Assembly: GCA_024704765.1 (NCBI GenBank)
Contig: JAKMXF010000321.1
Location: 310,001 to 374,000 of the forward strand
Source: Oopsacas minuta
Lineage: Eukaryota; Animalia; Porifera
DNA: 64,000 nucleotides
Direction of reading: 5' to 3'
Shown: positions 2,102-43,658 of the stretch, piece by piece
Position numbering within the stretch: position 1 is the stretch's first letter
How the letters are laid out: each line of letters starts with the position of its first letter
Position numbers and translations under genes: made by a program
The notes under the pieces: generated by a model
The model's database searches: none
What the model saw: only the letters and a program-made list of their open reading frames with translations
What the model was told of the DNA's origin: nothing

Positions 2102-2420
2102 TATTGATTTACCTTACAATTTTTATGAGTTTTTGTGTGATAATTATCACTTTAGAATGTTGGAATTGTGAATTGTCTTTTATTCGCTCTCAGGCGATAT
2201 ATGAATTATCTAATTTACTTAATCTGTGTTTGTTATGTCAAAACAAATTTCCAATAGCTCAATTTGATTCCATCTTTTCACCCACGTACCCTCTATACCA
2301 ATTTTGACACATTCTGTGGACCACCAAGAGTCCATGGATCCAAGGTTCGGGGATCGATGAATGGTTATGTTAATATTTTCACAGCTTTCCAATTAACTTC
2401 TAAACTACTAGAATTATATT

Positions 2421-3014: not shown

Positions 3015-3327
3015 TCTTATGAATTATGTTTTTTACTCAATTTATTTATGTCACAATTGCTTGTGGCATAAACCACTTCGCATAGACATATCTCGAAAAG
3101 TATAAGTGTGTTTTATATGCTCAAAATTGCGATATATGTAAGTCAGAGTTCCCTCTTCACGAAAAGTTGCGTCTCGGGACAATTCGTCTAAAGGGCCTGG
3201 AGAATTTCTCTCAGATATAATTACAATTTTCTCCTGTTAGTTGGATATATTGGTCAGTTTGACTCCATTAAGATAACGACTAATCCAAATACATTTAGAT
3301 ATTTCTGGTCTGGGTTTCAACATATAA

Positions 3328-3406
3328 TACATTCTGAGATCCTGTGGACCCCTGCTGTCGCCCTTGGATCACCGAGGGATCCATGGACCTCAGTTTAGGA
3401 ACCGCT
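3328..3406. mobile_element. Fragment of hAT-like short element (family D)
   Basis: Shares agatcctgtggacccctgctgtcg with 62196-62222 and ends aggaaccgct, like the gggaaccgctg TIR at 48490-48500. Confidence 0.5.
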
Positions 3407-3460
3407 TTCATCCTATCCTTAAAATAGTCCCCAATAACTGGAGTACTGTTTAATCTAGTT

Positions 3461-22959: not shown

Positions 22960-23728
22960 ATCAATAATAGTTCAGATATTTTATGGATTGACTTTAGTGA
23001 ACATAGCAAGCAGTTAACAAATTTAATATTTCTATGTTGTTTGATGGTGACTACTATTATGTGTCTTATACGCTACTATTTAGTGATGTACGAAGTACGT
23101 CCGTATGCGGTGTCCTGAGAAAACTAGTCCAATTTACATGAAAATGGGTAGATGGATACATTTTGGGGTGTGAGTTGCACCTAGGGTATGTAATTCTTCT
23201 AGTGTGAATATTTTAACACTTTTTTGGCATTGAAGGCTTTTAGCATTATTGAATACTCCCATTCTATTGGTTCTATTGCCTCCATGTAATTACACTGGCA
23301 CTGCATTTGCCGACGATTGAATTTTTTGTGAGATCCTTCGAGATAACAATCTATATTGTTATTCTTTCTTTCTCACTACATAATACATACCATTGTATAT
23401 AGTGAGTACTGATAAAGCTCAGTACTTGTTACAACATGTTATATTGCAGTATATTTATACGTAAATAACATTACCTCATATTAGATGGCTAATATTACTA
23501 GGATAGTATACCATTGTATTTAGCTGTGTTGTGTTAACGAAAATCCACACTGATATCAGATTTACTTCCATGTTTGTTAGTTGTTCGTAAATACAGTAAT
23601 TTATAAGACAAACTACACAGTAACCATGGTAACCGCCATATGTACAAAGTACAGTAACAGTCTCATGGCCCGGCATTATACAGTTGAACTATAATTATAT
23701 ATTACAATTTTAACAATGAACAGTCTTT

Positions 23729-24807
23729 ATGTCACGTAGCTTGTTAGAGCTAGATAAATATGTACAAACAGTGTTACCAAATGATCTCTCACGTCTAGAG
23801 GATCACACAGATAAACTGTCACGTTACTTAAGTCAGGGACAGAGGATCTTATTCCAGGAGGAGGAGAGAGATGCTAAATCTACTCTAAGACATTTGAAAT
23901 CTAATCTTAAAATTCTGGGTAATATTACAGCTGGTTTGTCACAGAGAGACCTGAGAGAAGCTAATAAGACAATCGATCCTATGAGGATACGAATTGAGAA
24001 AGTTGTGCATAAATTCCAGGTACAAACTAGAAATAATTACACTTATACCAAGTTTGTAAAATCCTGAATATTCCTGCGAAATATGAGTACAGTCAATTCC
24101 AGTTATATCGAAGCTCAAGGGTAGGCGATAACCGAAGGAAATTATGTTACTTTGATGGTTTGGGACCATATTTATACAATTTCAGGCTTGGTTATAAGCG
24201 GATATCTCGATATATCCGTGTTCGATATAATGGGAAATGACTGTAGCTTTTAGACGTTTAATATTTGTAGGAAGTTTGTCCAGGTCCTACCCTCCTAAAT
24301 GTAGAATCCTTATCCCACTCCACTTCAGAACAAGACCTCATGATGGCACAAGAAGAGATAGGAGACTCCAGATGGCAGAACGTGACAATGTCACCTCTAG
24401 AGGTTCAGGAAGTTATAACTCCAGAACAAAACGTAGCTCTCCAATCAGCTGAGACTCTACAGAAAGATTTAGAAGAAATACAGATGTTATTCATTGAGCT
24501 AGCAGAGCTCGCAGCCAATCAAAACGCACCTATTATACGTCTAGAACAGCATACAGAACAGACCGCACAGCATATAGGCACAGCAAGGAATTCTTTGTAT
24601 TATGCTTCTAAGCTAAAGGCAGCTGCTTTTCCAGTCGCCGGGGCGATAATCGGAGGGATGATAGGAGGACCGATCGGCGCTGTGGCCGGACTGAAGGGGG
24701 CTGCTATAGTTGGTATGGGAGGTGTGTCCATAGGAGCAGCTGCTGGGTGGGGAATTAAGAAATTCCATGTTTGGACTTCTGATCGATTGCATGAGAAAGA
24801 TGATTAA
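23729..24807 (+). CDS. STX17: Syntaxin-17; exons 23729..24019 and 24271..24807
   Basis: N-terminal VLPNDLSRLEDH...LKSNLK..IDP, SNARE helix, and the STX17-type Gly-rich hairpin FPVAGAIIGGMIGGPIGAVAGLKGAA. Phase-0 GT-AG intron. Confidence 0.88.
24088..24245. mobile_element. MITE family A, full-length reference copy in the STX17 intron
   Basis: TA + cagtcaattccagttatatcgaa ... ttcgatataatgggaaatgactg + TA; core ttga.ggtttgggaccatattt...caatttcag.cttgg.tataagcgg. Confidence 0.85.
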
Positions 24808-25258: not shown

Positions 25259-28200
25259 ATGATAGGTAGCGATGAGATTTCTTTGAAGATTCTTATGATC
25301 GGAGATAGTGGAGTTGGGAAATCTAGGTTCGTTATCTGCCACTGAATGTATTTACATATGTTTGTATGTTTGTTTATTGTTTGTAGTTTATTGTTGAGAT
25401 TTACAGATAACCATTATGACACAGATCAACCATCTACAATAGGTAATACTATACCGTCACCTCCCGTTATATCGAAGCTCAAAGGACCGCGTTAATTCCT
25501 TCGATATTACCGACTGAATTAATGTTACTTTGACGGTTTGGGACTATATTTGTGCAATTTCAGACTTGGATATAAGCGGGAGTTTGCTTTACTGTATATT
25601 CTATTTACAGCTCATTTAGTTGGAAAAAGCATTCCCAAATATCCAAATATCCACTTTTAGCACTACAAACTTTTCATAAATATATCTTCTAATTAATAAT
25701 AATATCCAAGATTCTAACTTTTCCTTGCTTGTGTAACTTTTTTCCAAATTCTAAAGCAAGTTAATTAGTTATGAATCATAGTAGCTGCCATAAAATATTA
25801 TATTAATCATATGTAATTCTCTAAGTAATACAAATATGATAAATTCTCCCTGATTATTTTATTATTTATTTCAATATAGGAGTTGATTACAAAGTTAGAT
25901 TGTGTGTCACTGACGGTCAGAAGGTTAAACTGAATATCTGGGTTAGTAGAATATTGTATTGCTGATTTCTGTAATCGTAATCTAAGCTATATGAAAGATG
26001 TTTTAGAGTAAAAGTACCTTTTACTTAAGAATACATAATCTCGTTTTCTTATTTGTTATTTCGACTAATACATGACTCTACCAATATTCGTACGTATAAA
26101 TATGAAGTATAAGAATTATAGACAATGATCTTATAATGGAGTTTATTGATGTATTATTTGATGGAGTTCTTGTGCTTATGAATCTAAGCTCATCTACACT
26201 ACTTTTCTTCTCGCTTTTTTGGCTATTGTTTCTCATATCTGAGTTGAAGCGTGTTTACCCTCTCTGGCAGTATCAAAGACGGCTATCCACACATGAGGGG
26301 AATCTTAAGGCAGTCGATTATAGGAATAATTTAGTAAAGAATTCGCTTGGGTTAATTTTCGTTGTTATTGAACTGATTACGTTCTCAATAGAGACATTAG
26401 AAGGAATTGCCCGTCGATTAATCATTGAAATCACAAACAAGGATATTTCTAATCCGTGTGTTCTGGTTGAGCAGAGTTATTTATGGTGGAATGTACAATA
26501 CTCAGTTATTAGAATCCTAGAAACGATAAGGCAGTCAGGAATGCTCTTATTACCAGCTGTATTAACTGTAATGGTTATGCATTTGCAGTCTATATACTCT
26601 GGATTTGATCGTAGAGTTAGTATTAAGAAATTTATAATACTAACTGTTGCCAGCTTGTTTGCATTACTAATTACTAAGAGTATGTTATCAACACTGCTTA
26701 TAGCTGAAACAATATATATGATAGCTCTTCCTATACTCTTCTATTTGTTAGTTAAAAATACTCATAGTTTGTATTCTAGCATGCAAAGACGTGTAGTTGA
26801 TATATCGCATGAAGGAAATAGTCATCGTATGTTGTATTTGAGAGAAAAACGATTAGTTAGAACTTTTAGATGGAAAATTATACCGATGTATACATCAGCT
26901 GGTATTGGTATATTCGGGCAAGTTTTATACGTGATGATATATGCAGGTGTTGGTTCTGTATTCATGAACAGCTGTTGGTTCGGTACACAATACAATATAC
27001 ACGTTAATGTGTCATATAATAATACTTTTACAGAAGCAACGGAATATTTTGTGTTCTTGTCACGGTTCTTGTATTTCTTGACTGGAAATTTGTTTCTATG
27101 GACTGTTATAATTGTGAATGTATGCATTCTTGTGGGTGTTCTCATTGAGAAGATGAGAGGTTGTTATCCAAGGCATTCTGTGAGTTTACAGGCTTGTCTT
27201 ATTGAAAATATCTAATGATTATTTGTATATTCAATTGATATTAATATCTCGAGTATAGTGTATACTTGTTCTATATAATGAGGGTTGTTTGGAATATTTT
27301 CAGTTTTTGCTTATTTGTTAAAAACCGATTCTATCAATACCAATACCAATATATACGTAATAGTCTCTTCTTCAAATAATCGATGAACTGATTAGAGACC
27401 GTTGAAACGTTACGTAACTACAAGGGGAGGGGTGGTATACGAAGTGACAGCCTCATTCTTTTTGTATTAGAAATGGTGAAAAAGCGTGACACAGGGATGG
27501 GGAGTAAAAATATATGTAATTTTGCGTACATAATGTTTAAACGGCCCTTACCGCTATATATTTCGAAAATACATTATGGCCTTACTCTAATAGTGAAATG
27601 CTTGCTGATAAAATCAGCTGCTAGAATACGTAATCTAAATTCACGCATTAGATGTATCCCTACTTTATAAGTGTAAGGTAATTGCTCAATCATGAAACGA
27701 GGTAGAAACATACAAAATATGCCAAGCACAGACATTAATTATTTCATCATACACAGTAATGTATCTTGCTCTTATTTAAATATCCCTACGGGGCTCTCTA
27801 TTATACAAGATCTAATGTTACACAACACATATATACGTCCTATATATATTGTAATATTATTGAGTAAAGGAAATGCCTGTAATAGACGATTCATTCGTTA
27901 TTCTAGGAAGAAAAATTTTCTCGTTTGTTTTCGAATTTAGTATACTTATATTGTTACTACTGTCTGTACAGTGGGTGTGTTACTTATATAGAGATTCAAA
28001 ATACGCATACCATACATGGAAGTACAAAATATCATGCTATACATTTGAGGAATGGATTGAGGGAAGGAATTTCAAACACCGCTATTATAAAAACATTTAT
28101 TTGATAATTTTCCTGTGTTCAGATATGATAATGTGTGTATCTCTTCTCCCACAAGCTGTTCTCCGTCTATTCGATATCACTCCGTTCCATTCTATCGGTA

Positions 28201-31200
28201 ATTGTACTTTTAAGAACTATTCTTGGTTACAGGAGTATTATAACGGGGGTCGTACTCTGTGGGTCCTGGAGAGTATCCGTCTGTCCAGTCTGGTATTGGA
28301 AACTGGTTTCTTCCAGCTAATCCTGTTGTATTTGATCGAAGTTTACACAACTGTTAATCAAAAGCCGATAAAATACCATCCAATATTCAAAAGATTGTCT
28401 CTCAACATTGTACTATCATTGCTGATATTTGTACTAAATTTAGACGATCATACATTCATGTTTGGCCAGATATTGTACGCGGTGGTTTTGCCAATTTATG
28501 CTGTAGTAACTATCAAATATGCTCGTAGACTTAGCATGGTATTAGGCTGGAGACATCAAGATGCTGAGTATATCTACTCGCAGAATAACGCGATATTGCT
28601 GAACGAAGAGAGAGTTATACTTAGATACAGGCGGACAATAGTACCGTTATATTTAACCTTATTAATAGTGTCTCTAGGTCAGGTCGTGTATATTATCGTG
28701 TATGTCCTAATAGATACGATATTACAAAATCCCTGCTGGTTTACTGAAATATACAGATTCAGTTATACGAATGCGAACACGCTTCTACCGAATGATTTAC
28801 AGTTTTATTGGACGTCAGCTGGCTTAGGAGCAAATGTAGTCTGGTTATCCACTGGTATGATATTTTTCTGGACAATTATTGTGGTGAATATTTACCATTT
28901 TGTGAGTGAGTTTTATCAAGAGTATAAAAGGAGGAAATTATTTAAAGACAGGGAATTAGTGAGGAGACTTATACCAAGCCAATAACAGATAAATAATAAT
29001 AATAGCATTGTGTTTTGTATTATTAAATAGTTTATGGATAAAATCGGATATTATTTTCGGACAGTGTTGGCTACCCAGCGCCTTTTATGTATGTATAGAC
29101 ATGACACACTCTAAATTTCATGAGGTATACCCTCTAGATTCCTGGAGGATGCATTTACAATATTAAATTTCCCTGAAGTTAGTTCTATAATGGATAAATA
29201 CGAGTATATCAGATACGAATACCCCCCCCTATTCTTTAGAGGAACACTGTCTTCTGATGTCATATCCCTCTTTGGGACAGGTATATAGATTCTGTGGGTT
29301 AAGATAATACGCCCGTTCTTGTAAAGTACGAGACATGCTCCATACTCATTAGAATTCTCCCCCCAGACTCTCTGCGAATTCCAAACACCCTTGTATTTAC
29401 TACGACTATTATAGATTTTTGGTCGTTTGTATTCCGACCTGTACACACATATGCGTGTATGTAATAAGTAATAATTAGCTATTTATTAGTTGCTGTATAA
29501 CTTTTGCTTATTAATATTATATTTACCTCTTCTTATGGTATTATGTCATTGGTTATATTAATTGTAGAAACACATTAACACAGACTAATGCTATCTTTAA
29601 TTAACCCTCGTGCCAGATACATTATGCTCATTTAAAATAATCTTATTATCCCTCCCCGTCCCTATTTTATTTCACTGTTTTAAACTCTGTAACTTCTACA
29701 AACAGGGCCTGTGGGAACGGATTGAAAAATAAAGAGCGAATTCCTAGTCCCATACAAATGAACCTTAATAATCGGAGAATTCGCAGAAACTGGAAATAAA
29801 TAATATTTTTCGGCGTCCCTGACACCTGTAATTGTGGAGGTTTTATTCCTATTTTTGTATTACAGATTGTTATAACGAGCTTTATTTAATAATACTAACA
29901 AATACTGCACAAATATATAACAAATGAATACTAATTAATTCCTTTTCCATTATTCAAGAGAGGTGCAATTATGTCATCACTCTCCTGCATAACACATCCA
30001 TCAGGATCTCTCTTCTTCGCTGCCTTTTCTTTCCTCCATTCTCTGAAGCTATAGACACACTGTACAATCAGTAAATACATCATGACTAGAAACCCGAGAA
30101 TCTGCCTAGATATATTCAGGAACTGTATCCAGTAACTACTATAATGCTCGAACTGGATATTAACCTGTTCTGCGATCTCGTAATTCCACGGGTAGGTCAC
30201 ATCCACCCAGCAATAGTTTACCACTGCTGTCTCTGCTATGATTGAAATTGCGAATATTATCTCGATTAGAATCATAATATGTACGAGACAAACCATCGGT
30301 ATGATGAATAGTTCATAGTGTAGTTTGTAACTAAGGCTAGCGTAATATTCACGAGATTTAAGATGGGCTAGATCTGCAATCTGTTTCCTCATTAAACAAT
30401 AAAACTGTATTAGACAAATGTCTATGATAAGTAAGTGAATAAGGATCAGGAATACGTATAGGGAGTGTCCAAAGAATATAGTTTCCAGCCAACAGTTGAG
30501 TAGAAAAACAGCAATAAATTCTAGGATCGCGATTATTGCAGTTACCTTCACCTGCCAGGTTAAAACACGCTTGTTGTTAGCATATTGTGCGGTTATCAAT
30601 TGTAAAAGGATTAATTCGAAGCTCGCCATGGCAAGTACTGCGAAAGGTTGCCATTGACTATGCAGAGCCCATCCGTACTCTATAGGTTCATTTATTTTGT
30701 TCCATAACCAGCTGTCATAGTGGATGCTACAATTTCCTACAGTCCTATCTGCTCTATCTGTATTATCAAATACATACACTACTCCACCGTTATGTATTGC
30801 CATGATAGGTATTAGCAGTAATAGAGTGCTAATGAATACCACACATAGGATATGTTTCGCGAATTCTTGCCTCAGTGCGTAGCCTGTATCCTCCTCACGG
30901 TATCCCCCTGTATGTGCCCTCCATGCTTTGTAGGATTTAGTTATCATACGTAAGAACTTCATCAACCAGCTGATCATTACGATAAATATTATAATTGCAC
31001 TTATCCATATAAGTCCAATGCTTATTATCGCTACAATATGTTGCCATGAGTGTACCATTTTGATTTGAATTACCAGTCAGAATACAGCCACTATTTATAT
31101 GTGCCTACTCATTAATAGAGAGGGAATAAGCCCAGTAGAATTTTACAAAATAATATATCAAGAAAAAGATTCATAAGCGAAATATACCTTTCAATAATTC

Positions 31201-34200
31201 TGTGAGCAAATGCTTACATTCAATAAATATTTGTGTTCTTTTCAAGAATTGAATGTTATTATTACAAAACCTTATTTTGTTTTTGAGGTATAAATTATTA
31301 AAATACATTACATAATGCTTTAGAATATTACTAAATGATTTTATGGAGGCTTTCACTTTTCTGGAAAGAGCTCTGCAAAATTTGAAAGTAAGCATGTATG
31401 TGGAATGTGATAAATTTAGAGACAACTCCACAACCTCTGAGATAGGTGTTATAATATCTTGACCTAGCAAATTTGAGGGTATCGATTAGAATAACATTGC
31501 ACTATCAGAGTTTTCGCGAGCCGCGCAGCTCAAGCATACGAAGTGTGCTTGTAATAATGATCCACACAGTACCTCGTTAATAACACGGTAAAGTAAATTT
31601 TCTGATAATGTGAACAAACCACTGTATTAATTATTTCTGTGTATGAGATGTTGGATACAGTGAAACCTCGAATTTCGGTTAAGAAGAACATAATTTTACA
31701 CAATTTCAGTCCATAAAATGGCTATTCAAATGTTTTTACTCCGAATAAGGAGTACAAATCTCGACGGTCCCTTGGTGTATGTATTAACGAGATTCTATTG
31801 TATGTGTTTTAACATAAGCCATGTTATGGGTGATACCGATAATCGCTGTATAAGTATACCCTAGCAATCTCTATTTATTCTTGCCCCTTGAGATTATATC
31901 CAAATTAGCTGAAACACAGAGTTAACTGAATTATATTACAAACATGGCAATCTTCCCAATAAAATAATATACACTATTATGAATGGATAATTACTTAATT
32001 AATTCATTGCCAGCCTCCATTTCTGTGACTGAGTGGAGTATTAATCTGTACGAACCCTGATGTCTTAGTACGTCTACACCTCATAACAACATGTATTAAC
32101 AGGATAACTACCTGGACAACCAAAATATACAATAGGTGTGCAGATATTGCCCAATCACGTACACATATTATTAAATACGTGACTAGCCTAAAAACGTGTG
32201 CGTTGATGTCAAATCTGTGAATTTTACATCCGTATACTTCTTCCAGCCAGCATGGGTTCAATAGGATAGTTTCACCGAAGACATTAACGACAGTAAACGC
32301 GATCAGTGTCAGCACGATGAACTGTAGTAAACACACATTCCAAATAGTCAACCATTTGTATCTGATTGTTACTTTGTCGAAAACGGTGAATTCTCTGCTC
32401 TCCTGGCTCATAAAATATGTCATGTCAATTTTATACCTTTTCAACCGTTGCCATAGTAACCACGAATAGTATATATTCAGAATCATATGGAATTGTAAAA
32501 AAATCGTGAATGCCAATCTCCCCAACAGCACAGTACATTTGAATATATTCAAGATGAAAATAGTCGCCATTTCTATTGGGATATAACTAGAGAATAGCTT
32601 TATGAGATTATTGTTATGTTGAGGTTCATGGCTGTATGTCTGTATAAGTACGAGGTATATCATATTGAAGATGGTCATTTCGGTAACTGCTAAGACTTGC
32701 CATAGAGATTCAATGATAGAAACTTCAGGGTGATTATGGTTTAACTTAAAGCTAAGCCAGGTAGATTCTTGGATTCGACATTTCTGCGATAACGTATCGT
32801 TCGGATGCAGATAGGACTTTTCGGTTTCAGCTATGATTCCGTCAATAAAGACAAACAACAACATCAACACGTCAACAATTAAAAACAAGAAAATAAGTAC
32901 ATTCTTGAAGTATGTGTTTCTATGAGACATTATCACATCAAAATACTCACTGTTATACTTGTAGTAATCTTTGTAGAATATCCATGAACGATATGACATT
33001 TTAACCTTCCCAGACATATAAATGAGCCATCCTAAACTAACCGCGAAGACCAGAAATGCAGTTACTCCCAGCGGAAACCCAGTTCCATAAAGGAGTACGT
33101 CATGAAAGACATGACTTTGATTCATACTCTATTCCTGTAGTTATTAACACAAATGTTTTTTATACATTTGATAGTTATATTTATGCATATTGTTACCAAA
33201 AGAGACAATATTTCTGTTAGCAGAATAATCTTTCTTAGTAATCGTAAGCTGAAACCAACTATTTTGTATTCCACATTACCTAATAGTACATTGAACTGCA
33301 AAGTAATACTTTTGGGAATTATAGTTTTGTATATGATAGATTAGGGAATGCTTATTGTTTACACAGCCCTCTATATTGGTACATGTACCTAGCACCAAAT
33401 AGGCTTAAAGGTATTGGTTCTAGTTAATGGATGCGATAAGTACTAAAAGTACAACGAAGGGAAGTTAATATTCGTTCGAGTTTTAACGGATGTTGATTGT
33501 ATGTACTATATACCTGGAAAATAGCCTTCTAAACGAAATTTAGACCCAATATGTAAGTAATCTTTGCTACAAATCATGAGTGTGGCTGTCCTTATGGTAG
33601 GTTGAAGTAGTCCACCTATTTACCTTACTGCATATGAATTGCCTTGTTGCCATAGTTACTATTATGTTACCCCAATGGTACCACTGATAAGCCATAAACA
33701 ACACAATTTAATAATGATCATCAATAACAACAAAATTTTCACAAAATGTACTACTCAAGCTAGGAGCGGTTTTTTCAAATTTTCAGTACACAGTCTCATC
33801 CGTATGAATTTATCTAACCTCCTTCTCCTGACATGTTCTGTTACTACAAAATAGGCATTCAGAACTAGAACTGAAATCAAGAATACTATCGCTGTCATAT
33901 CCCTTAATATAATACAAGTAAACGTTACGTATCTGTAGTAATTCTCTGCTTCATGGCTGATTGATATCTTTGTCTCTATCGGGAAATGGCGAATGAACCA
34001 ACAATTATTGAGGACTATAGTGCCAATCCATACATTACAAACTATGTAAGCAAATTCTGCGAAAATAAACAGAAAACTAACGAGCAATAGAATAATTATG
34101 GCTGATTTGTATAATTTGAAGTTGTATACGTCATTATTTTTCTGTATAGTGTCGAGTTCATCTTTCATGTCTGCTTGATACCATTTTAGTTTTTTGTAGA

Positions 34201-37200
34201 GTTCCATAGCATATTTTAAAGTTAGCCACCAATAAATGAGAGCTAGTATCCCAAATATTAACTGGCCAGTCATAATCATGTCAGGAGAGGTGTCAAAACA
34301 TAATAACAATAAAGTTTGTGGCACCATAATTACAAGGAATGTCATCTTTTCTTTCTTGAGCGAATAGTCACGTTTTTTCTTGTAACTAGCTAGCGACTGT
34401 GTGTAGATACATGTAAAGTATCTTAGAATTGAAATGAAAATACAAAATTCTGCCAAGACAGCGCTCTGCCAAATTCCCTCAAAATATGAAGACGAATGCT
34501 CTCTTTCGAATACGATTGAAGCGAGCCAAGTTTCGTTTCTAATTTTGCAATTTTCAGTTTTCAAGTCAATTGTTAGGTTACTGGAACTGATTAAATAAGT
34601 TGCAGACTCTGCGAAAGAGGCGACACACATAATCATATCAGCTATTAGTAGGGTAGAAATCAACGCACTTTTGTGAAAAAATACTTTTCGTTTCAGACCT
34701 TCGTGTCCCTCGTAAATATTCACTCTCCATTGTTTGTAATTATTCTTCGCTTGTTTTATAAAGTATGACAACCAAATTAGCGAAATTAGAATTACCATCG
34801 GTCCTGCAATCATTTGCATTCCAATTTCTATAACATAACTGTAATGCAGTATATGCGCTAATACACCCATTGTAATTCAAAATACAGAAATTGCAAATTT
34901 ATGTATTTATAACCTTTCTCTTTGTAATTCTTTGCGACGTCGTCAATGAATTATCTACCTACTTACAATCTTTAAACCAGCAATTAATTTGCTAGCTATT
35001 GATTACCTCCTAATATCTAATATTAGCTAAGATAACTTTACATTCTCAAAGGTTTTCAATACGACTAATCCTATGAGAATAATGAGATCAAAAGTTTAAC
35101 TATATACCATGGACAATACTTGAATGTTCCTTCGGTAATACGAAGTGTTTGCAAGCAGCACACCGCAAAATGTGATTCTATCCTTGAAATCAACAAATAA
35201 ACTTACATATGGATTGTATTTCATTGATTACATATCCTTACTAATTTTGAATTCCGAATTCAAACAAGCATACCATAACCTTTCCTCGACACAGACAAAG
35301 ACAAAATTGAGAATTACAACTATTAATTCAGAAAAGATAATTTATACAATTCCTCTATAATTCCCGAGCAGAGGTGTTGAGGATTTGAAATGTGTTCTAT
35401 ACACTCTCCTCTTAGAATTAATCTTATTACAGATTAATAACATATTCATAATTATCAGTGTAATCATTAACAGGCAAATTGCTACTGTCAAGTTTGTGGT
35501 AACAACTAGTTGAAGTATTGAGTATATATCCTCAGCTTTTGAGCTTATATTCAATGGGAATTGTATTCTGAACGTCTTCTCGACCCAGCAGTTATTTAGA
35601 AGAATAGTACCGACAAATTCTTTAACAAGCTCATCGATTATTTTCGATATTAACAGATATTGGCCTATTATGAAAATCGGCTTTATGAATAATCTGTATT
35701 GTCGTATTTGCTGTGAATGTGTCCTCAAATCGACAACGTCTATTCCATCCGCATGCTCTAGATCCTGTTGCCTCATTTTTAATTGTACGTTCAATTTCTT
35801 AGCGTAATGCACGCCTGCAAAAAACGCTACAATTAACACAATCGAGTTCAAGATCCAATCGATTAGAATTGTCCAGGGTAAGAATGTTGTTATGGCAACG
35901 AGAAGAGCAGGTAGGAATGTTACAAACAACCATAACACCTGTTTTGCGCTGTAAGCAAACCTTTCTTTGAACTTGTAAACATTATTGAAATACAATAATA
36001 TCAATAAAAACAGCAAAGTCACGTATACCACCAACCCCTTTCTAACTGCCATAGCTGATGCGAATACCTTCTCATATCTCAAATGTAGATAACTGCCCCC
36101 GTATAAACTGCAGTTATTAACGTAGATTGTGTTATTTTTAGAATGAGCGAGGTTAAACGAGAGTTCCGTAATCATGCTCACTACACATAGGCTTTCTATT
36201 AGGAGGTAAAAGGAAAATAATATACTTTTGAAAAATCGGTTTTTGTAGTTCAAAAGTCTCACTTCGCTCTCAGCATCACTTGGCCTTTGCTTTATATTAT
36301 TGATATCAGTTAATGTTGTCTTTAATTTAAGGAAGAAATGTATGATCCAAGAAACGGAAATCAACAAAAACAAGCAAAATATGCTTATAGTTACGTAACT
36401 AAATGCTTTGTAAACAACAAGAAGAATCATTTTTATTTCCAATGAATAGTTTTGAATATTTTTATACTATTCTTTAGATTACCTGTCATCTGTGTAATGC
36501 AATTTATCGGGGAAAAGAATTTGATAATTTTTCTGATTTTGTGAAGCTCATTTCTACTTTTATGGTAGTGTGATTACCTAAATCTACCTGCTATTCATCT
36601 TTGATAAGAATTCTTAAATACCTTTCCTTACAATATGATTATTTGTGATATTATATCCCTTCGTAAGTAGAATAATCTAATATTTTGATTATTTCTGAGT
36701 CATTCACAGCAATAATTGTCTAACATAGTTTCTTTCAATGATTGTTAAGCAAACTGAGTTAACTGTAAATTCCTATATTATAATTCTGTGTGTTGAAATC
36801 TTACGGCCTTGATTGTGCACTTTGTCGCCAATTTATTCCAAATTGTAATTCTATTATTTACCGAATACTTCTGGGAAATTGTGTGATTTTAGGACGTCGA
36901 AAAGGTGCTAAAATCTCGTTTTTGGTGCGGGAATTGGTTAAAACGAAGTGGTGCTCCTTTTCATTACAAATGTAACACTTCTCCCGTAATCGGTTAATAG
37001 AATTATTTAATTAAGATCCTAAGGAGCGCATTATCTCCAAAGCTCTAACAATTATCCTCATTTAACAATTTAATATATTTTTACTAAGCACATTTCGCAT
37101 TTTTGAGCTTTGCGGCTTGCGAACACTTGTACATTCAATTTACCCAAAACATTTGTCACCTTTCTCAGAAAGATTGAGAGAAATCGCTTAGTATTGCGAG

Positions 37201-40200
37201 TTATTCTTAGCCTTATCATTCCGCGTACATACATGCTGAATTTCAAGTTTACCAGTCTTTCAATTAATTCAGTATGCGCCTCGACTTCAATCAGGTTTTC
37301 TAAACCTGATTGAAGTTCAGTGACATGTGTATACTTTCAGAATTTGCATTATGTCTCAAAACTCAAATATCACATTTTGATTCTAATACAGCCAATGGAC
37401 CATTTTACCTATTTTCTAATTAGATATACGCGCTCATTTCTATATCCGTGTTTGTTATACAGGTAATTGATATGTAAACTAATAAGTAATATATCCACAA
37501 TTAACGTGATAGCATCTTAAGACTTATTCAATTGGGAAATATACTATTGCCTTACAGGTATATTCTATGATTACAGATTATGTGTAATCTATATTACATA
37601 ATTATGAAAATTTATACAAAACATTATCAAATATATTATTTATACAATTCAGATATTAACAAAGGTGTGAAGTTATGTATTACAATTGTTATTTGCAATT
37701 TGTATGAACTATTCCAGCATTTTAACCTCATACTTTTCCTATTTATAAGGTTAGAAAGATTTTCTAGGGAAATTTAAATGTGATTTGTCCCTTTGATTTA
37801 TACTTTAGGCTTACAACCTTGAAACTTATTTAAATAGATGTATGTAACACAATCTGTTATATAAGAAATTTGATCAACAATGGATTCTAATTCTACACAC
37901 CATTTCCCTGTAATCTCTAACTATCATTTCACAAGTGTCTTGCTACGTATTTTATTGACAATTAACATTTTCGTTATTTTCATATGGATCACGTATTTAT
38001 TCAAATTGCTGGTGATTCAAATCGTTCGCTATTTCAAGATTGCAAAGTCGAATTTTCCAGGTTCTAATGATTATGAGGAACAGTATAGAGTAAAGGTAGA
38101 TATTTTAAAATACAGTTTTGTAATAGGATGTTTTACTTGCGAGCTATTTAGCGAAATGTTCGGGTTTTCGGCAGGAGAAGTTGTGAGAGCCTATCCCATA
38201 ACAGGCTTCACACCCTTTCGTCTCTCTAACTCATGTGAATTGCTGCCAGTCGGCTGGCTATATAGACTCTACCAATTTCCAATCGCTTACCGGATATTTC
38301 ATGCCCTTTGGTGCTGCTTCACGATTCTAGCAATTTCCCTCTTTTTGTGGTTGTTTCATATTTTGACGAAAGTATATCGGAAATCTCTGAACCAAATCAG
38401 ATACGTTTTTCCAATAATCATCCTGACGTTGTCTGTCCTTATAAATTTCATTCTGTCAGTTGTGCTTCAAACTGTTGTGTTTGGTAACATTCTATACTGC
38501 CTTTTCGTTGTCATGCTGTATATAGCTGTTATAATAGAAGTGAGACGTTTTGGTCGAGTTTTGGAAGAAATCCGAAATGGATCAATCTTAAATGTTGAGA
38601 ACAGTTTTGAAAAGGAATATTATATGATTAAACTCTCTCACGACAAGCGGACAATCAGAAAATACGGAACAGTAGTTAGTCTAATCCTATTCTTACTGGG
38701 TCTTGATTTATTCTCTCAATCCATATACATCATTTTCAATGTATTCATATATTCAATACTGATTAATCCGTGTTGGTTCAAGCATGTGTATGGAATACCT
38801 CTCAATTTCCAACTCACCTCGCATACGATAGATAACTTAGAGCTATCAGCTGATTACCTAATACTCTTCCGGGATATCATGTCAGGGTGCTACTTCTTCG
38901 GATTTATTTGTTTTAATACCGGAATGTTAATAATACCAATTATGCATTCTGTGTTCAAAAAACTAAGCAAAACAAGAGAAATTGAAGTAAATGATTTGAA
39001 GGAAAAGTTGTTACAATAATTTCAATGCTATGCTGTTCGTTATTAATATTACTTACATTATAATATGCTAATTTTCCTTTAAGAATATATACAAATATTT
39101 TATTCATAAATATCCATTGAGAGCAAGTCTATTATGATAATTCTAAGATTTTAATTATTTGTTTACTTTATATTCATAAAAACAACATTAAACTTACATA
39201 TGATGAAGTTTAAGATGTGAAGTTTGGGTACAAACATACATACAAGCAACAATTGAATTTAATAATTCGTATAGTAATAATAATTATACAAGTAAAGGTT
39301 GTTTGAGTTGAGGTTTGTACAGACATCTACACACTTTAGAAGTTCTAATTTCTATCAAAATTCTGTCATAAACGATCGAACAGAAATACAAAACACTCAA
39401 CACACTCAAATACCCAATCACCAGTAATCCAGTAACTGTTCTAATCATCCACACTATATAGCAAGCTTTGTAGAAGATCTCTTTATCAAATTCAAGATTA
39501 GAGATTTGTAAATTGAAATTATAGTTTATCCAACAGCTGTTTAGTAAAAATGTTTGTAATACTAGAACTATAGTGAAGTATAGGAAACAACTTAGTATGT
39601 ATGCTTGGAAGAAAACGGATAACACTAACTGTGCTTTTCTCATTTGGATGCACTTTTTATGGTATTTTAGAGGGAAATCGTGTTCATTTGAGTATTCAAA
39701 ATCTTTAATTTGCCATGTAATCAGCATGAAGAGTCTCTTAAAATCTCTCAAACAGTGTACTATTAAGAATTGTATGATGAAAAGCGAGAATCCAAATCCT
39801 ATTGCAAATGATTGACTGAAGGAGCAAAGTATTAATACGATGGGTAACGTAATGCATAGAAATAGTTTAGAAAATATTTGTTTTTGACGTAATTTCTCTT
39901 TCATAAATGCAGCTTTTAGGTGTAGAACAGTCAATCGTATCAAAATGAGCTCAAATATGTATAATGTCTGTCTTAAACCTTCTAAAAGCCAATTCACATA
40001 GCTCACCTTTTCAAAATCATACAACCAACTATTTTTATCCAATTCACAGTTCGGGGCAATCGTCAAATTAGCCTTATTAGACTTCCAAACAGTTGCGAAC
40101 AGGTTCTGTATTGTGAACACGGTAAGGCTATTCCCTACCTCAACTAATACGATTGATAGCAGCAATATATTCCTTATTAGAGCAGTCTTGCTATTAATGT

Positions 40201-41318
40201 ATCCTATTGTATTACTGCTGTGTAGTTGATATCTCCATGTATGGTATGACTTCTTTATTTGTGAAACACAATAAACGACCCAACCCAATAATACAACAAT
40301 AAAGAGAGGAGTGTAGCCCCACATAGCGAAGTCTGTAATAAACCCGGATAATCTCACGTGACTACTCGACATTGTAATATTTATTAAATCAATACTGCAC
40401 CAGTTTTTATAGTCACAACCAGGAGAAAAATGACGTATATTTATTTGTTTTGTTTACATCAACAATACAACTATTAAATATTACTTATGATCCAAAAGAC
40501 ATGAACCACAACTCTGTGCAATCGTGATTACTGGTCTTTTATGGTTACTTTCAGCTCAATCCCTTTAAATGTTTTGTAATATAGTTTAGTAGAAATATTT
40601 TGTCAACTATATTGCTTACAACACAGTTTATGAAAGCATAGATGTAATACAAGAAATTAAGTATAATTTTGTAATAGGACACTGCTGGTCAGGAAAGGTT
40701 CAGAACTTTAACGCCCTCATACTACAGGGGAGCACATGGTGTTATAATTGGTGAGTAATTACTCATATATTCACACCTTTTCGGTATATCTTATGATTGT
40801 TTACTTGTTGTTCTATTCAAGTTTACGACACAACTTGCGTAGAGTCATTTAACAGTCTACAGACGTGGTACAACGAGATGGGAACGTATTGTACTAATCC
40901 AGATGGTGTAACGATGTTGGTTGGCAACAAGACTGACAGAAAGGTATGCAACTGTTTATTGAAACAAAAAGCAGTTATATTGGTATACTCTATAGGCGGA
41001 GAAGGCTATTACGAGAGAACAGGGCCTGCAATTTGCTAGAAGACACTCTATGCTGTTTATTGAGACAAGGTTAGTATGCTAGCCAAAAATATTATATGTT
41101 CTTCGAGGGAAATTTGAAAAAGTGTTTTGTGAGTATATTGTATGTAATTTAGTGCGAAACTGAATGAACATGTTCAAGTAGCCTTTGAAGAGCTTGTACG
41201 TAAAATCCTACAAACACCTACTCTAATCACAGCTGTTAAAGATAAATATGCTCCCCTCACTATGCCAGACTTAGAGGATTCCAGCGGACAACAGGCCAGT
41301 TGTTCCTACATATGTTAA
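25259..41318 (+). CDS. RAB18: Rab18 small GTPase, 7 exons
   Basis: Exons 25259-25326, 25387-25442, 25880-25941, 40678-40750, 40822-40943, 40996-41069, 41153-41318 are all GT-AG and phase-consistent. They give [98 protein letters not shown]. Confidence 0.95.
25452..25596. mobile_element. MITE family A in RAB18 intron 2
   Basis: taccgtcacctcccgttatatcgaagctc, family core ttgacggtttgggactatattt, right end ...tttactgta. Confidence 0.75.
26095..26102 (+). promoter_or_regulatory. TATA box of nested 7TM gene 1
   Basis: TATAAATA, first T 41 nt before the ATG at 26136; the same spacing recurs in paralogues. Confidence 0.45.
26136..27215 (+). CDS. Orphan 7TM receptor-like protein 1 (nested in RAB18 intron 3), 359 aa
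   Basis: Seven hydrophobic segments; ECL1 NPCVLVEQSYLW, ECL3 MNSCWF; basic ICL1 and ICL3. Confidence 0.85.
   Translation: MEFIDVLFDGVLVLMNLSSSTLLFFSLFWLLFLISELKRVYPLWQYQRRLSTHEGNLKAVDYRNNLVKNSLGLIFVVIELITFSIETLEGIARRLIIEITNKDISNPCVLVEQSYLWWNVQYSVIRILETIRQSGMLLLPAVLTVMVMHLQSIYSGFDRRVSIKKFIILTVASLFALLITKSMLSTLLIAETIYMIALPILFYLLVKNTHSLYSSMQRRVVDISHEGNSHRMLYLREKRLVRTFRWKIIPMYTSAGIGIFGQVLYVMIYAGVGSVFMNSCWFGTQYNIHVNVSYNNTFTEATEYFVFLSRFLYFLTGNLFLWTVIIVNVCILVGVLIEKMRGCYPRHSVSLQACLIENI
27873..28985 (+). CDS. Orphan 7TM receptor-like protein 2 (nested), 370 aa
   Basis: Seven TM segments; GNCTFKNYSWL, QNPCWF. Confidence 0.85.
   Translation: MPVIDDSFVILGRKIFSFVFEFSILILLLLSVQWVCYLYRDSKYAYHTWKYKISCYTFEEWIEGRNFKHRYYKNIYLIIFLCSDMIMCVSLLPQAVLRLFDITPFHSIGNCTFKNYSWLQEYYNGGRTLWVLESIRLSSLVLETGFFQLILLYLIEVYTTVNQKPIKYHPIFKRLSLNIVLSLLIFVLNLDDHTFMFGQILYAVVLPIYAVVTIKYARRLSMVLGWRHQDAEYIYSQNNAILLNEERVILRYRRTIVPLYLTLLIVSLGQVVYIIVYVLIDTILQNPCWFTEIYRFSYTNANTLLPNDLQFYWTSAGLGANVVWLSTGMIFFWTIIVVNIYHFVSEFYQEYKRRKLFKDRELVRRLIPSQ
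29697..29860. mobile_element. MITE family B, degenerate copy between 7TM genes
   Basis: gggcctgtgggaacggattgaaaaataaagagcgaattcctagtccc resembles the 49685 and 63349 copies. Confidence 0.6.
29931..31058 (-). CDS. Orphan 7TM receptor-like protein 3 (nested), 375 aa
   Basis: Seven TM segments; GNCSIHYDSWL, VNYCWV; C-terminal APLL. Confidence 0.85.
   Translation of the reverse strand: MVHSWQHIVAIISIGLIWISAIIIFIVMISWLMKFLRMITKSYKAWRAHTGGYREEDTGYALRQEFAKHILCVVFISTLLLLIPIMAIHNGGVVYVFDNTDRADRTVGNCSIHYDSWLWNKINEPIEYGWALHSQWQPFAVLAMASFELILLQLITAQYANNKRVLTWQVKVTAIIAILEFIAVFLLNCWLETIFFGHSLYVFLILIHLLIIDICLIQFYCLMRKQIADLAHLKSREYYASLSYKLHYELFIIPMVCLVHIMILIEIIFAISIIAETAVVNYCWVDVTYPWNYEIAEQVNIQFEHYSSYWIQFLNISRQILGFLVMMYLLIVQCVYSFREWRKEKAAKKRDPDGCVMQESDDIIAPLLNNGKGIN
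31092..31099 (-). promoter_or_regulatory. TATA box of 7TM gene 3
   Basis: TATAAATA on the minus strand, first T 41 nt before the ATG. Confidence 0.45.
31657..31802. mobile_element. Degenerate CAGT-ended TIR element
   Basis: tacagtgaaacctcg ... cgagattctattgta imperfect inverted ends with TA flanks. Confidence 0.5.
32004..33125 (-). CDS. Orphan 7TM receptor-like protein 4 (nested), 373 aa
   Basis: Seven TM segments; QKCRIQESTWL, LNPCWL. Confidence 0.85.
   Translation of the reverse strand: MNQSHVFHDVLLYGTGFPLGVTAFLVFAVSLGWLIYMSGKVKMSYRSWIFYKDYYKYNSEYFDVIMSHRNTYFKNVLIFLFLIVDVLMLLFVFIDGIIAETEKSYLHPNDTLSQKCRIQESTWLSFKLNHNHPEVSIIESLWQVLAVTEMTIFNMIYLVLIQTYSHEPQHNNNLIKLFSSYIPIEMATIFILNIFKCTVLLGRLAFTIFLQFHMILNIYYSWLLWQRLKRYKIDMTYFMSQESREFTVFDKVTIRYKWLTIWNVCLLQFIVLTLIAFTVVNVFGETILLNPCWLEEVYGCKIHRFDINAHVFRLVTYLIICVRDWAISAHLLYILVVQVVILLIHVVMRCRRTKTSGFVQINTPLSHRNGGWQ
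33755..34870 (-). CDS. Orphan 7TM receptor-like protein 5 (nested), 371 aa
   Basis: Seven TM segments; ENCKIRNETWL, LNNCWF; C-terminal KPLLA. Confidence 0.85.
   Translation of the reverse strand: MGVLAHILHYSYVIEIGMQMIAGPMVILISLIWLSYFIKQAKNNYKQWRVNIYEGHEGLKRKVFFHKSALISTLLIADMIMCVASFAESATYLISSSNLTIDLKTENCKIRNETWLASIVFEREHSSSYFEGIWQSAVLAEFCIFISILRYFTCIYTQSLASYKKKRDYSLKKEKMTFLVIMVPQTLLLLCFDTSPDMIMTGQLIFGILALIYWWLTLKYAMELYKKLKWYQADMKDELDTIQKNNDVYNFKLYKSAIIILLLVSFLFIFAEFAYIVCNVWIGTIVLNNCWFIRHFPIETKISISHEAENYYRYVTFTCIILRDMTAIVFLISVLVLNAYFVVTEHVRRRRLDKFIRMRLCTENLKKPLLA
34904..34911 (-). promoter_or_regulatory. TATA box of 7TM gene 5
   Basis: TATAAATA on the minus strand, first T 41 nt before the ATG. 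Confidence 0.45.
35342..36430 (-). CDS. Orphan 7TM receptor-like protein 6 (nested); first ATG at 36430 (the ORF track starts at a TTG, 36442)
   Basis: Seven TM segments; NNCSLYGGSYL, LNNCWV; C-terminal TPLL. Confidence 0.85.
   Translation of the reverse strand: MILLVVYKAFSYVTISIFCLFLLISVSWIIHFFLKLKTTLTDINNIKQRPSDAESEVRLLNYKNRFFKSILFSFYLLIESLCVVSMITELSFNLAHSKNNTIYVNNCSLYGGSYLHLRYEKVFASAMAVRKGLVVYVTLLFLLILLYFNNVYKFKERFAYSAKQVLWLFVTFLPALLVAITTFLPWTILIDWILNSIVLIVAFFAGVHYAKKLNVQLKMRQQDLEHADGIDVVDLRTHSQQIRQYRLFIKPIFIIGQYLLISKIIDELVKEFVGTILLNNCWVEKTFRIQFPLNISSKAEDIYSILQLVVTTNLTVAICLLMITLIIMNMLLICNKINSKRRVYRTHFKSSTPLLGNYRGIV
37880..39019 (+). CDS. Orphan 7TM receptor-like protein 7 (nested), 379 aa
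   Basis: Seven TM segments; NSCELLPVGWL, INPCWF; ends EKLLQ. Confidence 0.85.
   Translation: MDSNSTHHFPVISNYHFTSVLLRILLTINIFVIFIWITYLFKLLVIQIVRYFKIAKSNFPGSNDYEEQYRVKVDILKYSFVIGCFTCELFSEMFGFSAGEVVRAYPITGFTPFRLSNSCELLPVGWLYRLYQFPIAYRIFHALWCCFTILAISLFLWLFHILTKVYRKSLNQIRYVFPIIILTLSVLINFILSVVLQTVVFGNILYCLFVVMLYIAVIIEVRRFGRVLEEIRNGSILNVENSFEKEYYMIKLSHDKRTIRKYGTVVSLILFLLGLDLFSQSIYIIFNVFIYSILINPCWFKHVYGIPLNFQLTSHTIDNLELSADYLILFRDIMSGCYFFGFICFNTGMLIIPIMHSVFKKLSKTREIEVNDLKEKLLQ
39284..40372 (-). CDS. Orphan 7TM receptor-like protein 8 (nested), 362 aa
   Basis: Seven TM segments; PNCELDKNSWL, LNSCWI; ends QPLLV. Confidence 0.85.
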   Translation of the reverse strand: MSSSHVRLSGFITDFAMWGYTPLFIVVLLGWVVYCVSQIKKSYHTWRYQLHSSNTIGYINSKTALIRNILLLSIVLVEVGNSLTVFTIQNLFATVWKSNKANLTIAPNCELDKNSWLYDFEKVSYVNWLLEGLRQTLYIFELILIRLTVLHLKAAFMKEKLRQKQIFSKLFLCITLPIVLILCSFSQSFAIGFGFSLFIIQFLIVHCLRDFKRLFMLITWQIKDFEYSNEHDFPLKYHKKCIQMRKAQLVLSVFFQAYILSCFLYFTIVLVLQTFLLNSCWINYNFNLQISNLEFDKEIFYKACYIVWMIRTVTGLLVIGYLSVLSVLYFCSIVYDRILIEIRTSKVCRCLYKPQLKQPLLV

Positions 41319-41527
41319 CCACCCTACTCACTTACTGTGGTTTTAAGATGTACATTTATAACTTTCTGTCAGAGTTTGTATTGATTTTACACAATTCGAT
41401 TCTATAATCGATTCTGTAGTTACCTAGCTTGTGTATTGTAATGTGAGATTACAGATATTTTCCTTTTGTAAGGGTAAATTTCAAAAATATTAAATTTATA
41501 ATTACAGATAACTCTCGTTTATATATT

Positions 41528-41820
41528 GAAGCTCTAGAGACCGCGAAATTCTTTGATATAACCAATGTCACTTATGTACAGTCAACTTCTGTTATATCGA
41601 AAAGCCCGCTTATATCAAAGTCTGAAATTGTATACATATTGTACAAAAACCGTCAAGATAACACCAAAATCATAGGCTATATCGAAGTAATTATCGTGGT
41701 CCCTTGAGCATCGAAAGAATGAGGGTTGCTGTATGGTACGCATTAACGGTTTGGGACAATATTAAAACAATTTTAGACTTGGATATAAGCGGATATTCGA
41801 TTTATCGGGAGTTTACTATC
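41528..41820. mobile_element. Cluster of MITE family A copies (full copy 41577..41733 plus flanking fragments)
   Basis: tacagtcaacttctgttatatcgaa ... gggttgctgta, followed by a second core acggtttgggacaatatt...ttagacttggatataagcgg. Confidence 0.7.
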
Positions 41821-41936: not shown

Positions 41937-43658
41937 ATGCAATTTATGAGAATATATTCGCTTAAACTTGTTTACTTACCAAAACTTTTCCATAACCACT
42001 CGTACGCAATAAACTTACCAAACCGATTAACATTCCAATATACCAGAATGGCTTCTAAGGTATCAGACCCCTCCCAGATGGATACAACAGTTATTGACCA
42101 AGAGGTACTTAATCTCACTGATCTGCCCCCTGGGGTCATGAAACAAGTGGAGCTGCAGGACGGTTATAAAGTTCTGCTCGTGAACAATGAAGGGATAATC
42201 TCTGCATTGGCAAATGCATGTACTCATTACGGAGCCCCGCTTATAAACGGTGATAAGATTGGTAATACTATTCGGTGTCCTTGGCATGGGGCATGTTTCA
42301 ATACAATCACAGGAGATATTGAAGATTTCCCCGGCCTGGACAGTCTTAAGAAGTATGATGCTACTGTCGCTAATGGTAAAATAAGAGTACGAGCTAAAGT
42401 ATCAGATTTAACTCAGAAAAAACGCACGAAAGGAATGGTAAAATATTCAGAGAAAAATAATAATGTCGTCCTTCTGGTCGGAGGCGGGCCTGCTTCTACT
42501 GTTTGTGCTGAGACACTACGTCAAGAGGGATATGACGGGAAGATTGTCATGGCATGTAAGGAAAAGTTTCTACCGTACGATCGTCCTAAAGGTTCAAAAG
42601 CTATGGAGACGAAACCTGAAAGTATTTCTCTAAGAAAGGAAGAGTTTTATATAGATAACGGGATCCAAGTTATGCTGGGTAAAGAAGCTACAAGTATTGA
42701 TATTGACAAGAAAGAAGCCGGGTTCAAAGATGGATCCAGACAGAAATACGATCAGCTGCTTCTAGCAACTGGAACTGAATGTCGGACACTTCCAATCCCT
42801 GGCAAAGACCTCAAAGGTTTGTACACGCTGCGAACCATGGATGAGGGAAATGCTATATTCTCTGCCGCTAAAGACAAGACCGTAGCGATCATTGGTGCTT
42901 CTTTCATTGGTATGGAGGTAGGATCTTGTCTTGTTAAAATAGCTAAATCAGTCACTTGCATTGAATACGCACCTTTTCCATTCCCTGTACTGGGAAAGGA
43001 AGTAGGAATGGGACTTAAGGAATTCTCTGCACAGCAAGGTGTTAAGTTCGAGTTAGGTGTGAGAGTAGAAGAATACATAGGAGAGGGGGGAGAGATCAAA
43101 GGTGTGAAACTCTCTGAGGGTAGAGTGATCCCCTGTGACATGGCAGTGGTAGCAGTAGGCGTCAGACCGAGTACTGATTTCCTGATTGGTTCTGGTATAA
43201 ATCTTAATAAAGATGGATCTATATCTACAAATGAATTCCTCGCGGTTAAGCCAGACATATTTGCTGCTGGAGATATTGCTATGTTTCCTAGTCCATTTGG
43301 TTACGGGGAATCTGTACGTATTGAACATTGGCAGATTGCACTTAATCACGGACGTGTAGCCGCTATGAATATCCTCAAAAGACAAACACCAGTTGATACA
43401 GTCCCCTTTTTCTGGACTGTCCTGTTTGGGAAAAGTGTACGCTACTGTGGATACTCGAGGGGATATGATAAATTCGTTTTTGAAGGTTCAATCGCTGACC
43501 TAAAGTTTGTGGGATATTATTTGAGAGAGGGGAAGCTTGTTGCGGTTGTTGGACTAAATTCTGATCCAAAAGTATCCCATTATGCGAACAAAATGAAAAT
43601 TGGACAATTCTCTACACTAGAAGAGCTGAGACAGACTACTACGCTTCACGAGCCCTGA
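41937..43658 (+). CDS. AIFM3: Apoptosis-inducing factor 3-like Rieske/FAD oxidoreductase, intronless (start may be 41937 or 42048)
   Basis: Rieske CTHYGAPL...RCPWHGACFN; FAD/NAD motifs VGGGPAS, YDRPK, IGASFIGMEV, AAGDIA, RIEHWQIA, VPFFWT. Confidence 0.92.
   Translation: MQFMRIYSLKLVYLPKLFHNHSYAINLPNRLTFQYTRMASKVSDPSQMDTTVIDQEVLNLTDLPPGVMKQVELQDGYKVLLVNNEGIISALANACTHYGAPLINGDKIGNTIRCPWHGACFNTITGDIEDFPGLDSLKKYDATVANGKIRVRAKVSDLTQKKRTKGMVKYSEKNNNVVLLVGGGPASTVCAETLRQEGYDGKIVMACKEKFLPYDRPKGSKAMETKPESISLRKEEFYIDNGIQVMLGKEATSIDIDKKEAGFKDGSRQKYDQLLLATGTECRTLPIPGKDLKGLYTLRTMDEGNAIFSAAKDKTVAIIGASFIGMEVGSCLVKIAKSVTCIEYAPFPFPVLGKEVGMGLKEFSAQQGVKFELGVRVEEYIGEGGEIKGVKLSEGRVIPCDMAVVAVGVRPSTDFLIGSGINLNKDGSISTNEFLAVKPDIFAAGDIAMFPSPFGYGESVRIEHWQIALNHGRVAAMNILKRQTPVDTVPFFWTVLFGKSVRYCGYSRGYDKFVFEGSIADLKFVGYYLREGKLVAVVGLNSDPKVSHYANKMKIGQFSTLEELRQTTTLHEP

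Follow-up and report, generated by a model that had tools for sequence, protein, structure and literature searches.

Introduction

Can eight intact genes of one protein family lie inside a single intron of a small GTPase gene, and if so, how did they come to be there, how long have they been there, and what do they encode? This question is raised by a 64,000-nucleotide stretch of the genome of the glass sponge Oopsacas minuta (GenBank assembly GCA_024704765.1, contig JAKMXF010000321.1, positions 310,001 to 374,000 of the forward strand; henceforth the window, with positions counted from its first letter), in which intron 3 of the gene for RAB18 contains eight seven-transmembrane (7TM) open reading frames (ORFs), g1 to g8. 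We argue, with a probability of roughly 85%, that this is a glass-sponge RAB18 gene whose ancestral phase-0 intron within the WDTAGQ motif now measures 14.7 kb and serves as a nest to eight independent genes of a single exon each, encoding proteins with a predicted G-protein-coupled receptor (GPCR) fold. A preliminary description of the window had presented the array as a complete receptor cluster, expanded in place from an inserted founder gene and unusual for such a genome, and we consider each of these claims alongside the evidence that bears on it.

Results and Discussion

Structure and Identity of the Host Gene

The host gene spans positions 25259–41318 on the forward strand and comprises seven exons, which splice into an ORF of 621 nt and 206 codons. 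Exon 1 (25259–25326) runs from M1 to the GVGKS of the P-loop, with a GT donor at 25327, and is followed by exon 2 (25387–25442), which encodes SLLLRF...STIG and whose flanking intron positions are the same in the sponges Sycon and Geodia, and by exon 3 (25880–25941), which ends in KLNIW and has a counterpart of 86–100% identity upstream of the cluster in three related contigs (L001, L002 and L008). The second half of the gene consists of exon 4 (40678–40750), which starts with DTAGQERF, of exons 5 (40822–40943) and 6 (40996–41069), both placed by the gene model, and of exon 7 (41153–41318), which includes the stop codon and gives the C-terminus ...SCSYIC. All introns are of the GT-AG type, with lengths of 60, 437, 14,736, 71, 52, and 83 nt, such that the five introns other than intron 3 sum to 703 nt. 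Intron 3 (25942–40677) is in phase 0 and splits W62 from D63 within WDTAGQ, the G3 motif: exon 3 terminates at 25941 with ...AAACTGAATATCTGG (in a longer reading, ...CTGAATATCTGG) and is followed by GTTAGT, and exon 4 begins with GACACTGCTGGTCAG at 40678, directly preceded by ...TAATAG. The exon boundaries at 25941 and 40678, with their GT and AG, had been given in the preliminary description and are exact to the nucleotide, and the seven-exon ORF likewise confirms the 14,736 nt that it gave for intron 3 and its range of 52–437 nt for the other introns.

By sequence, the 206-residue product is a RAB18 orthologue. A phmmer search against the PDB returned human RAB18 (1x3s) at 230 bits (E = 1.6e-67), with YPT1/Rab1 next at 170 bits, and the top named matches in a collection of 5.8 billion proteins are Rab-18, Rab-18-B or Rab-18a; furthermore, the GTPase motifs GDSGVGKS, WDTAGQE, GNKTD, and ETSAK are all present. 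Since no further Rab-like piece was found within the 64-kb window, the two halves of the product (residues 1–62 and 63–206) are complementary and unduplicated, and the possibility that they belong to different Rab genes, raised at the outset, is not borne out.

The Eight Nested ORFs

Inside intron 3, of which 60% is nested coding sequence, lie eight intact single-exon ORFs of 359–379 amino acids in the orientation + + - - - - + -, exactly as first described. All eight are 7TM paralogues. On the host strand, g1 (26136–27215, 359 amino acids) starts 194 nt past the donor and is followed by g2 (27873–28985, 370 amino acids), which is the one modeled below. Next come four genes antisense to RAB18, namely g3 (29931–31058, 375 amino acids), its sister lineage g4 (32004–33125, 373 amino acids), g5 (33755–34870, 371 amino acids), and g6 (35342–36442), which opens with a TTG at 36442 and has its first ATG at 36430, giving 362 amino acids. 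Separated from g6 by a 1.4-kb spacer and divergent from it, g7 (37880–39019, 379 amino acids) is again on the host strand, and the antisense g8 (39284–40372, 362 amino acids) completes the array, its start codon lying 305 nt from the RAB18 acceptor. Spacers within the nest measure 194–1449 nt.

The chance of a random open frame of 360 codons at 33% GC is ~1e-12. Pairwise identity among the eight proteins is only 16–22%, and they share three invariant features: a Trp in the first transmembrane helix (TM1), a Cys located in outer loop 1 and, following TM6, an N-x-C-W motif. When the intron was searched for DNA repeats, no long ones shared by the paralogues turned up, and there is therefore no sign of gene conversion. 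Counts of poly(A) signals are uninformative at the AT-richness of the nest.

Continuity of RAB18 across the Nest

All eight ORFs lie inside 25942–40677, and the host exons that flank them are joined in transcript-derived sequences of relatives. A Trinity ORF (P0162) that matches exons 3, 5, and 6 of a related taxon at 100% identity reads KLNIWDTAGQ without a break. The passage from KLNIW to DTAGQ is likewise continuous in P0163, which is among the two RAB18 proteins nearest to that of the window (86% identity) and is encoded on a 922-nt contig from SRR29297749, a run of metatranscriptome reads from the glass sponge Aphrocallistes beatrix (PMC11525543); this level of identity places the window in a glass sponge distinct from Aphrocallistes.

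In the case of O. minuta itself, a search limited to RNA libraries listed no run. The genomic sequence of the window is contained in four sequencing runs, all from a single sample, and we compared their Logan contigs with the assembly over positions 36000–41500, with the caveat that these runs may share their sample with the assembly. This interval is covered, with differences at two short repeats only. In one of the four (X4), apparently enriched in RNA, the terminal part of the intron has a word depth of 35 versus 1300–9000 over exons 4–7, with the rise, from 35 to 4676, in the bin of exon 4. Furthermore, a loose end at 41069 in X4 continues as TGCGAAACTGAAT, the first letters of exon 7, and thus marks the exon 6/7 junction, and a unitig ends at 40706, the point at which a spliced path with a preceding G would enter a 31-mer graph. 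This pattern supports the RAB18 host model, but falls short of a read across 25941^40678.

These data also bear on the possibility that the locus is an artefact, in which the two halves of RAB18 are parts of separate genes or remnants of pseudogenes, or the assembly is wrong over the 14.7 kb. It is true that none of the loose ends listed over 36000–41500 is an own-species read or contig with the 25941^40678 junction, which weighs against the host model, and that the 5.8-billion-protein collection holds no protein identical to the 206-residue product (the best match is at 91%). However, the halves are exactly complementary, with no duplicate Rab piece in the 64 kb, the same split with the cluster between the halves recurs in four other assemblies, RAB18 is continuous across the junction in the transcript-derived sequences of relatives, and the Logan contigs of all four runs agree with the assembly save at the two short repeats. 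Taking these points together, we regard an artefact as very improbable.

We note in passing that the same protein collection holds g2 solely as a truncated protein of 286 amino acids (P0001), and that public gene models for the RAB18/g2 locus look incomplete. In addition, Logan contigs of all four runs pile up in the spacers between g6 and g7 (36900–37100) and between g7 and g8 (39157–39204), where summed word depth reaches up to ~60,000 versus ~100 nearby and unitigs break at both pile-ups; these are short high-copy or low-complexity sequences.

Conservation of the Nest in Related Glass Sponges

In four other related assemblies, the array again lies between exons 3 and 4 of RAB18, with order and orientation kept (two of the four are partly covered), such that synteny of intron 3, which the preliminary description had proposed as a check, is now established. 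In two of them, intron 3 measures 15,135 nt and contains eight genes in the orientation + + - - - - + - (ctg17052), or is ~14.1 kb long (about 14,084 nt, ctg28050). The spacers at the two ends are similar across the five taxa, with g1 starting ~150–230 nt past the donor and g8 starting 205–516 nt from the acceptor, and the orthologues of g2 and g8 on long ENA contigs are 48–66% identical.

In a maximum-likelihood tree, the nested genes fall into eight orthogroups with 100% support throughout, every one composed of the window gene and a single gene from each taxon, on stems of 1.1–2.5 changes per site that far exceed the branch lengths within groups. Because these are eight one-to-one orthogroups with long stems, all eight duplications predate the common ancestor of the five taxa. 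In the closest species pair, the ratio of nonsynonymous to synonymous substitution rates (dN/dS) is 0.14–0.25 for all eight genes, at dS values of 0.48–0.87; comparisons of the window with the other taxa show saturation at synonymous sites. It follows that the guests are functional genes and that the nest is old. All eight guests are under purifying selection.

With only 16–22% identity among paralogues and all eight genes already present in the five-taxon ancestor, the expansion is neither recent nor ongoing.

Origin of the Nest

The orthologous intron, between IW and DTAGQ, has the identical position and phase 0 in two other sponges, the demosponge Geodia barretti (53 nt) and the calcareous Sycon ciliatum (595 nt), and is empty in both. 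As a small empty intron occupies the same position in these outgroups, the intron is ancestral, and the nested genes arrived in it, as a pre-existing intron, within the glass-sponge lineage. RAB18 proteins of human (1x3s), G. barretti and S. ciliatum are 58–66% identical to the window product and have the P-loop, the G3 motif and intron positions in common with it, whereas intron 3 of the window is 25 to 280 times longer and filled with genes. An intron of 53–595 nt in other sponges has here held an eight-gene array for long enough to saturate synonymous sites.

The outgroups also differ from the window at the RAB18 C-terminus (41301–41318), which reads CSYIC in the window and CSYMC or CSSMC in its relatives (P0162 and P0163), that is, C-S-[YS]-[IM]-C in glass sponges, versus a C-x-x-x box in Geodia (CTVT) and Sycon (CSTL). 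The C-x-x-x-C ending of glass sponges may be a lineage-specific change of the RAB18 prenylation motif.

The scenario of a single founder that inserted and then expanded in place, put forward in the preliminary description, fares less uniformly. In a FastTree phylogeny of 137 family sequences, g1/g2 and g3/g4 are sister pairs (Shimodaira–Hasegawa-like support of 88 and 96, respectively), the members of each pair being same-strand neighbors, the pattern predicted by local tandem duplication, and this part of the scenario stands, as does the pre-existing intron. However, g1–g8 are not resolved as an exclusive clade in this tree, where other clades of the family fall in the same polytomy. We consider a single founder expanding in place plausible. 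In the sequence of events that we favor, one or a few family genes would have entered the intron, or arisen there by duplication, early in the lineage of the five taxa, and would then have duplicated locally; the nest would have been kept through the strong microsynteny and the tolerance of nesting that are typical of glass-sponge genomes.

Predicted Fold of the Nested Proteins

The preliminary description had called the nested genes 7TM receptors. The 7TM part of this claim is supported by hydropathy, charge distribution and predicted fold. Seven hydrophobic segments at matching positions are seen in 8/8 proteins, and Lys and Arg residues follow the positive-inside rule, with 20–29 on the predicted cytoplasmic side compared to 3–9 outside. 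The predicted topology places the N-terminus outside, with N-glycosylation sequons within the first extracellular loop (ECL1), and loop sizes are 42–48 residues for ECL1, 7 for ECL2, and 36–41 for ECL3. An AlphaFold2 model of g2, obtained with 22 family sequences, has a predicted local distance difference test (pLDDT) score of 86.4 and a predicted template modeling (pTM) score of 0.82, and consists of seven long helices and a C-terminal extension. When this model was compared with the PDB using Foldseek, 50/50 best matches were GPCRs, at E-values of 3e-3 and worse. By these predictions, the family has the hallmarks of a GPCR fold, namely seven helices in GPCR order and packing with the N-terminus outside.

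Several points, nevertheless, count against reading these proteins as receptors. The Foldseek E-values are weak (3e-3 and worse against the PDB and 1.7e-4 against AFDB), and identity to solved GPCRs is just 7–13%. No Pfam match was obtained in g1–g8 (none of the hits at E <= 1 reaches threshold), nor at E <= 0.01 in 30 distant members of the family, so that the Pfam evidence did not bear the receptor label out. Finally, the word receptor describes a function read from a predicted fold.

Comparison with class A GPCRs (Pfam PF00001/7tm_1; for example NTSR1, P2Y14, and EP3) is instructive in this respect. In addition to the lack of a hidden Markov model (HMM) match and the 7–13% identity, class A receptors have a disulfide between TM3 and ECL2 and the E/DRY, CWxP, and NPxxY micro-switches, and the nested family has neither: the TM3–ECL2 cysteine pair is absent in g1–g8, whose 7-residue ECL2 is without a conserved cysteine, and none of the three motifs is visible in the family consensus. 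The invariant cysteines of the nested proteins instead lie in ECL1 and in the N-x-C-W that opens ECL3 (C111 and C288 in g2), where they are probably joined by a disulfide. The nested family has a predicted GPCR-like fold, yet fits none of the described GPCR classes.

A different interpretation is that g1–g8 are GPCR-like seven-helix proteins that do not signal, but serve in intracellular trafficking or transport, as 7TM proteins of the GPR107/108, TMEM87, Wntless, GPR137, and THH1/TOM1-like kinds. The language-model neighbors of the nested proteins include clusters of THH1/TOM1/TOM3, GPR137, and PRRT3-like proteins (scores of 0.88–0.91), the structural neighbors include a Wntless-like transmembrane domain (template modeling score of 0.51), and the lack of prominent E/DRY or NPxxY motifs in the consensus points in the same direction. 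To this can be added a C-terminal P-L-L-like motif, found in most family members a few residues from the end (e.g., 28950–28985), which may be a sorting signal and whose near-invariant Leu is position 366 in g2. On the other hand, in two independent structural scans, 50/50 of the best solved matches were genuine GPCRs (classes A, B, F, T, and adhesion), and the predicted N-out topology with glycosylation sequons in ECL1 also disfavors a non-signaling role. Moreover, large, tandem, single-exon families are typical of the chemoreceptor-type expansions of animals. We therefore find this interpretation unlikely, albeit worth keeping in mind, and judge from the predicted structure that the g1–g8 proteins most likely act as surface receptors. 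We note that the extracellular loops do not stand out as a hypervariable, diversifying face within orthogroups, where identity is 0.50 for ECL3, 0.55 for ECL1, 0.63 for the first intracellular loop (ICL1), and 0.69 for TM3.

Expression of Host and Guests

In the mechanism that we propose, RAB18 would be transcribed through the nest and spliced normally, and each nested gene would be an independent single-exon unit with its own promoter. It is also conceivable that the 7TM genes have been kept in the intron since their expression depends on RAB18, through its open chromatin or promoter, such that host and guests are co-regulated, as in the sheltered, host-linked locus of the preliminary description, or, in a variant of this idea, that the same-strand genes g1, g2, and g7 are released from the host pre-mRNA, for example by spliced-leader trans-splicing. 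If true, such coupling would link a set of receptors specific to the lineage with a trafficking GTPase, and would account for gene order, orientation, and short end spacers being frozen over five taxa while synonymous sites are saturated. The best argument in its favor is the position of g1, 194 nt from the donor, which leaves almost no room for a promoter, and Francis et al. (2023, PMC10282587) describe a trans-spliced leader from a glass sponge. However, that leader is found on just 4% of long reads, and a frozen gene order is expected in any case, given that two glass sponges keep roughly half of their genes in synteny (PMC10282587). Furthermore, 5/8 nested genes are antisense to RAB18, and because they lie on the opposite strand they cannot come from RAB18 pre-mRNA. 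Dependence on the host therefore seems improbable to us, and release of the same-strand genes from its pre-mRNA equally so. The nest is a convenient locus at which to study the cost or use of host transcription through both same-strand and antisense guests.

Comparison with Known Nests

A conserved host gene with intact genes in an intron, often in antisense orientation, is known from human NF1, whose intron 27b houses EVI2A, EVI2B, and OMG. Chemoreceptor genes also occur in introns of Caenorhabditis elegans and Drosophila, and genes of receptor families are frequent guests. These nests contain one to three genes, in contrast to the eight paralogues in one 14.7-kb intron of RAB18.

The preliminary description had regarded such a nest as unusual for a compact genome, an expectation that published work on glass sponges contradicts: in Aphrocallistes vastus, 2432 genes (12.4%) are nested, "many of which are conserved", glassin itself is a nested gene, and two glass sponges show extensive microsynteny (PMC10282587). 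The nests of A. vastus and O. minuta described there have in common with the RAB18 nest a compact genome, single-exon guests, conserved hosts, nests shared across species, and microsynteny. They differ from it in that all eight guests in the RAB18 intron belong to one family; as all are paralogues, this nest is a tandem array rather than a set of mixed guests. Neither the RAB18 locus nor the nested family is described in that study (there is no match to "Rab" or "GPCR" in its text). The RAB18 nest is a confirmed and well-conserved example of a known genome feature, and not a new phenomenon. It also has a bearing on annotation, as gene finders that forbid nesting will break hosts such as RAB18.

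The Family outside the Intron

The guests are possibly more interesting than the nest. A profile search of 1.84 billion representatives yielded 235 clusters at E <= 0.001 (clustered at 50% identity), nearly all of 350–395 amino acids, such that the unnamed family comprises at least 235 clusters at that level. Ten of these clusters were looked up; they are without a name, and come from ENA assemblies or Logan contigs only. The placeable relatives of the nested family are all from glass-sponge material. Taking into account the predicted GPCR fold and the lack of a Pfam match, the family is a candidate for a set of receptors specific to this lineage, in an animal that has no nerves.

The cluster within the intron had been called complete. 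Searching the window with a profile of g1–g8 (hmmsearch) revealed, however, a ninth, distant 7TM member at 54772–55890 on the forward strand (E = 1.3e-9, profile positions 23–360), 13.5 kb downstream of RAB18 and with its own orthologues in the family tree (P0037 and P0041), so the family is not restricted to the RAB18 intron.

Neighboring Genes and Minor Features

The neighborhood of the nest is kept in all related contigs fetched (L001–L009), and consists of CHD1, an STX17-like gene, a 155-residue ORF, RAB18 with its nest, and a Rieske/Pyr_redox_2 gene. In the window, CHD1 (a single ORF of 1770 amino acids), the STX17-like gene, and the 155-residue ORF form an upstream block at 17647–24807, and the single-exon Rieske/Pyr_redox_2 (AIF-like) gene lies downstream of RAB18 at 41937–43658. 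Scans of the whole window for tRNA genes and Rfam families returned no matches. On the 3' side of RAB18 there is an element resembling a miniature inverted-repeat transposable element (MITE), with 43-nt terminal inverted repeats (41606–41648 and 41750–41792) that are 84% complementary. A related copy of 62 nt (81%) lies inside intron 2 of RAB18, at 25530–25591, and may explain the 437-nt size of that intron.

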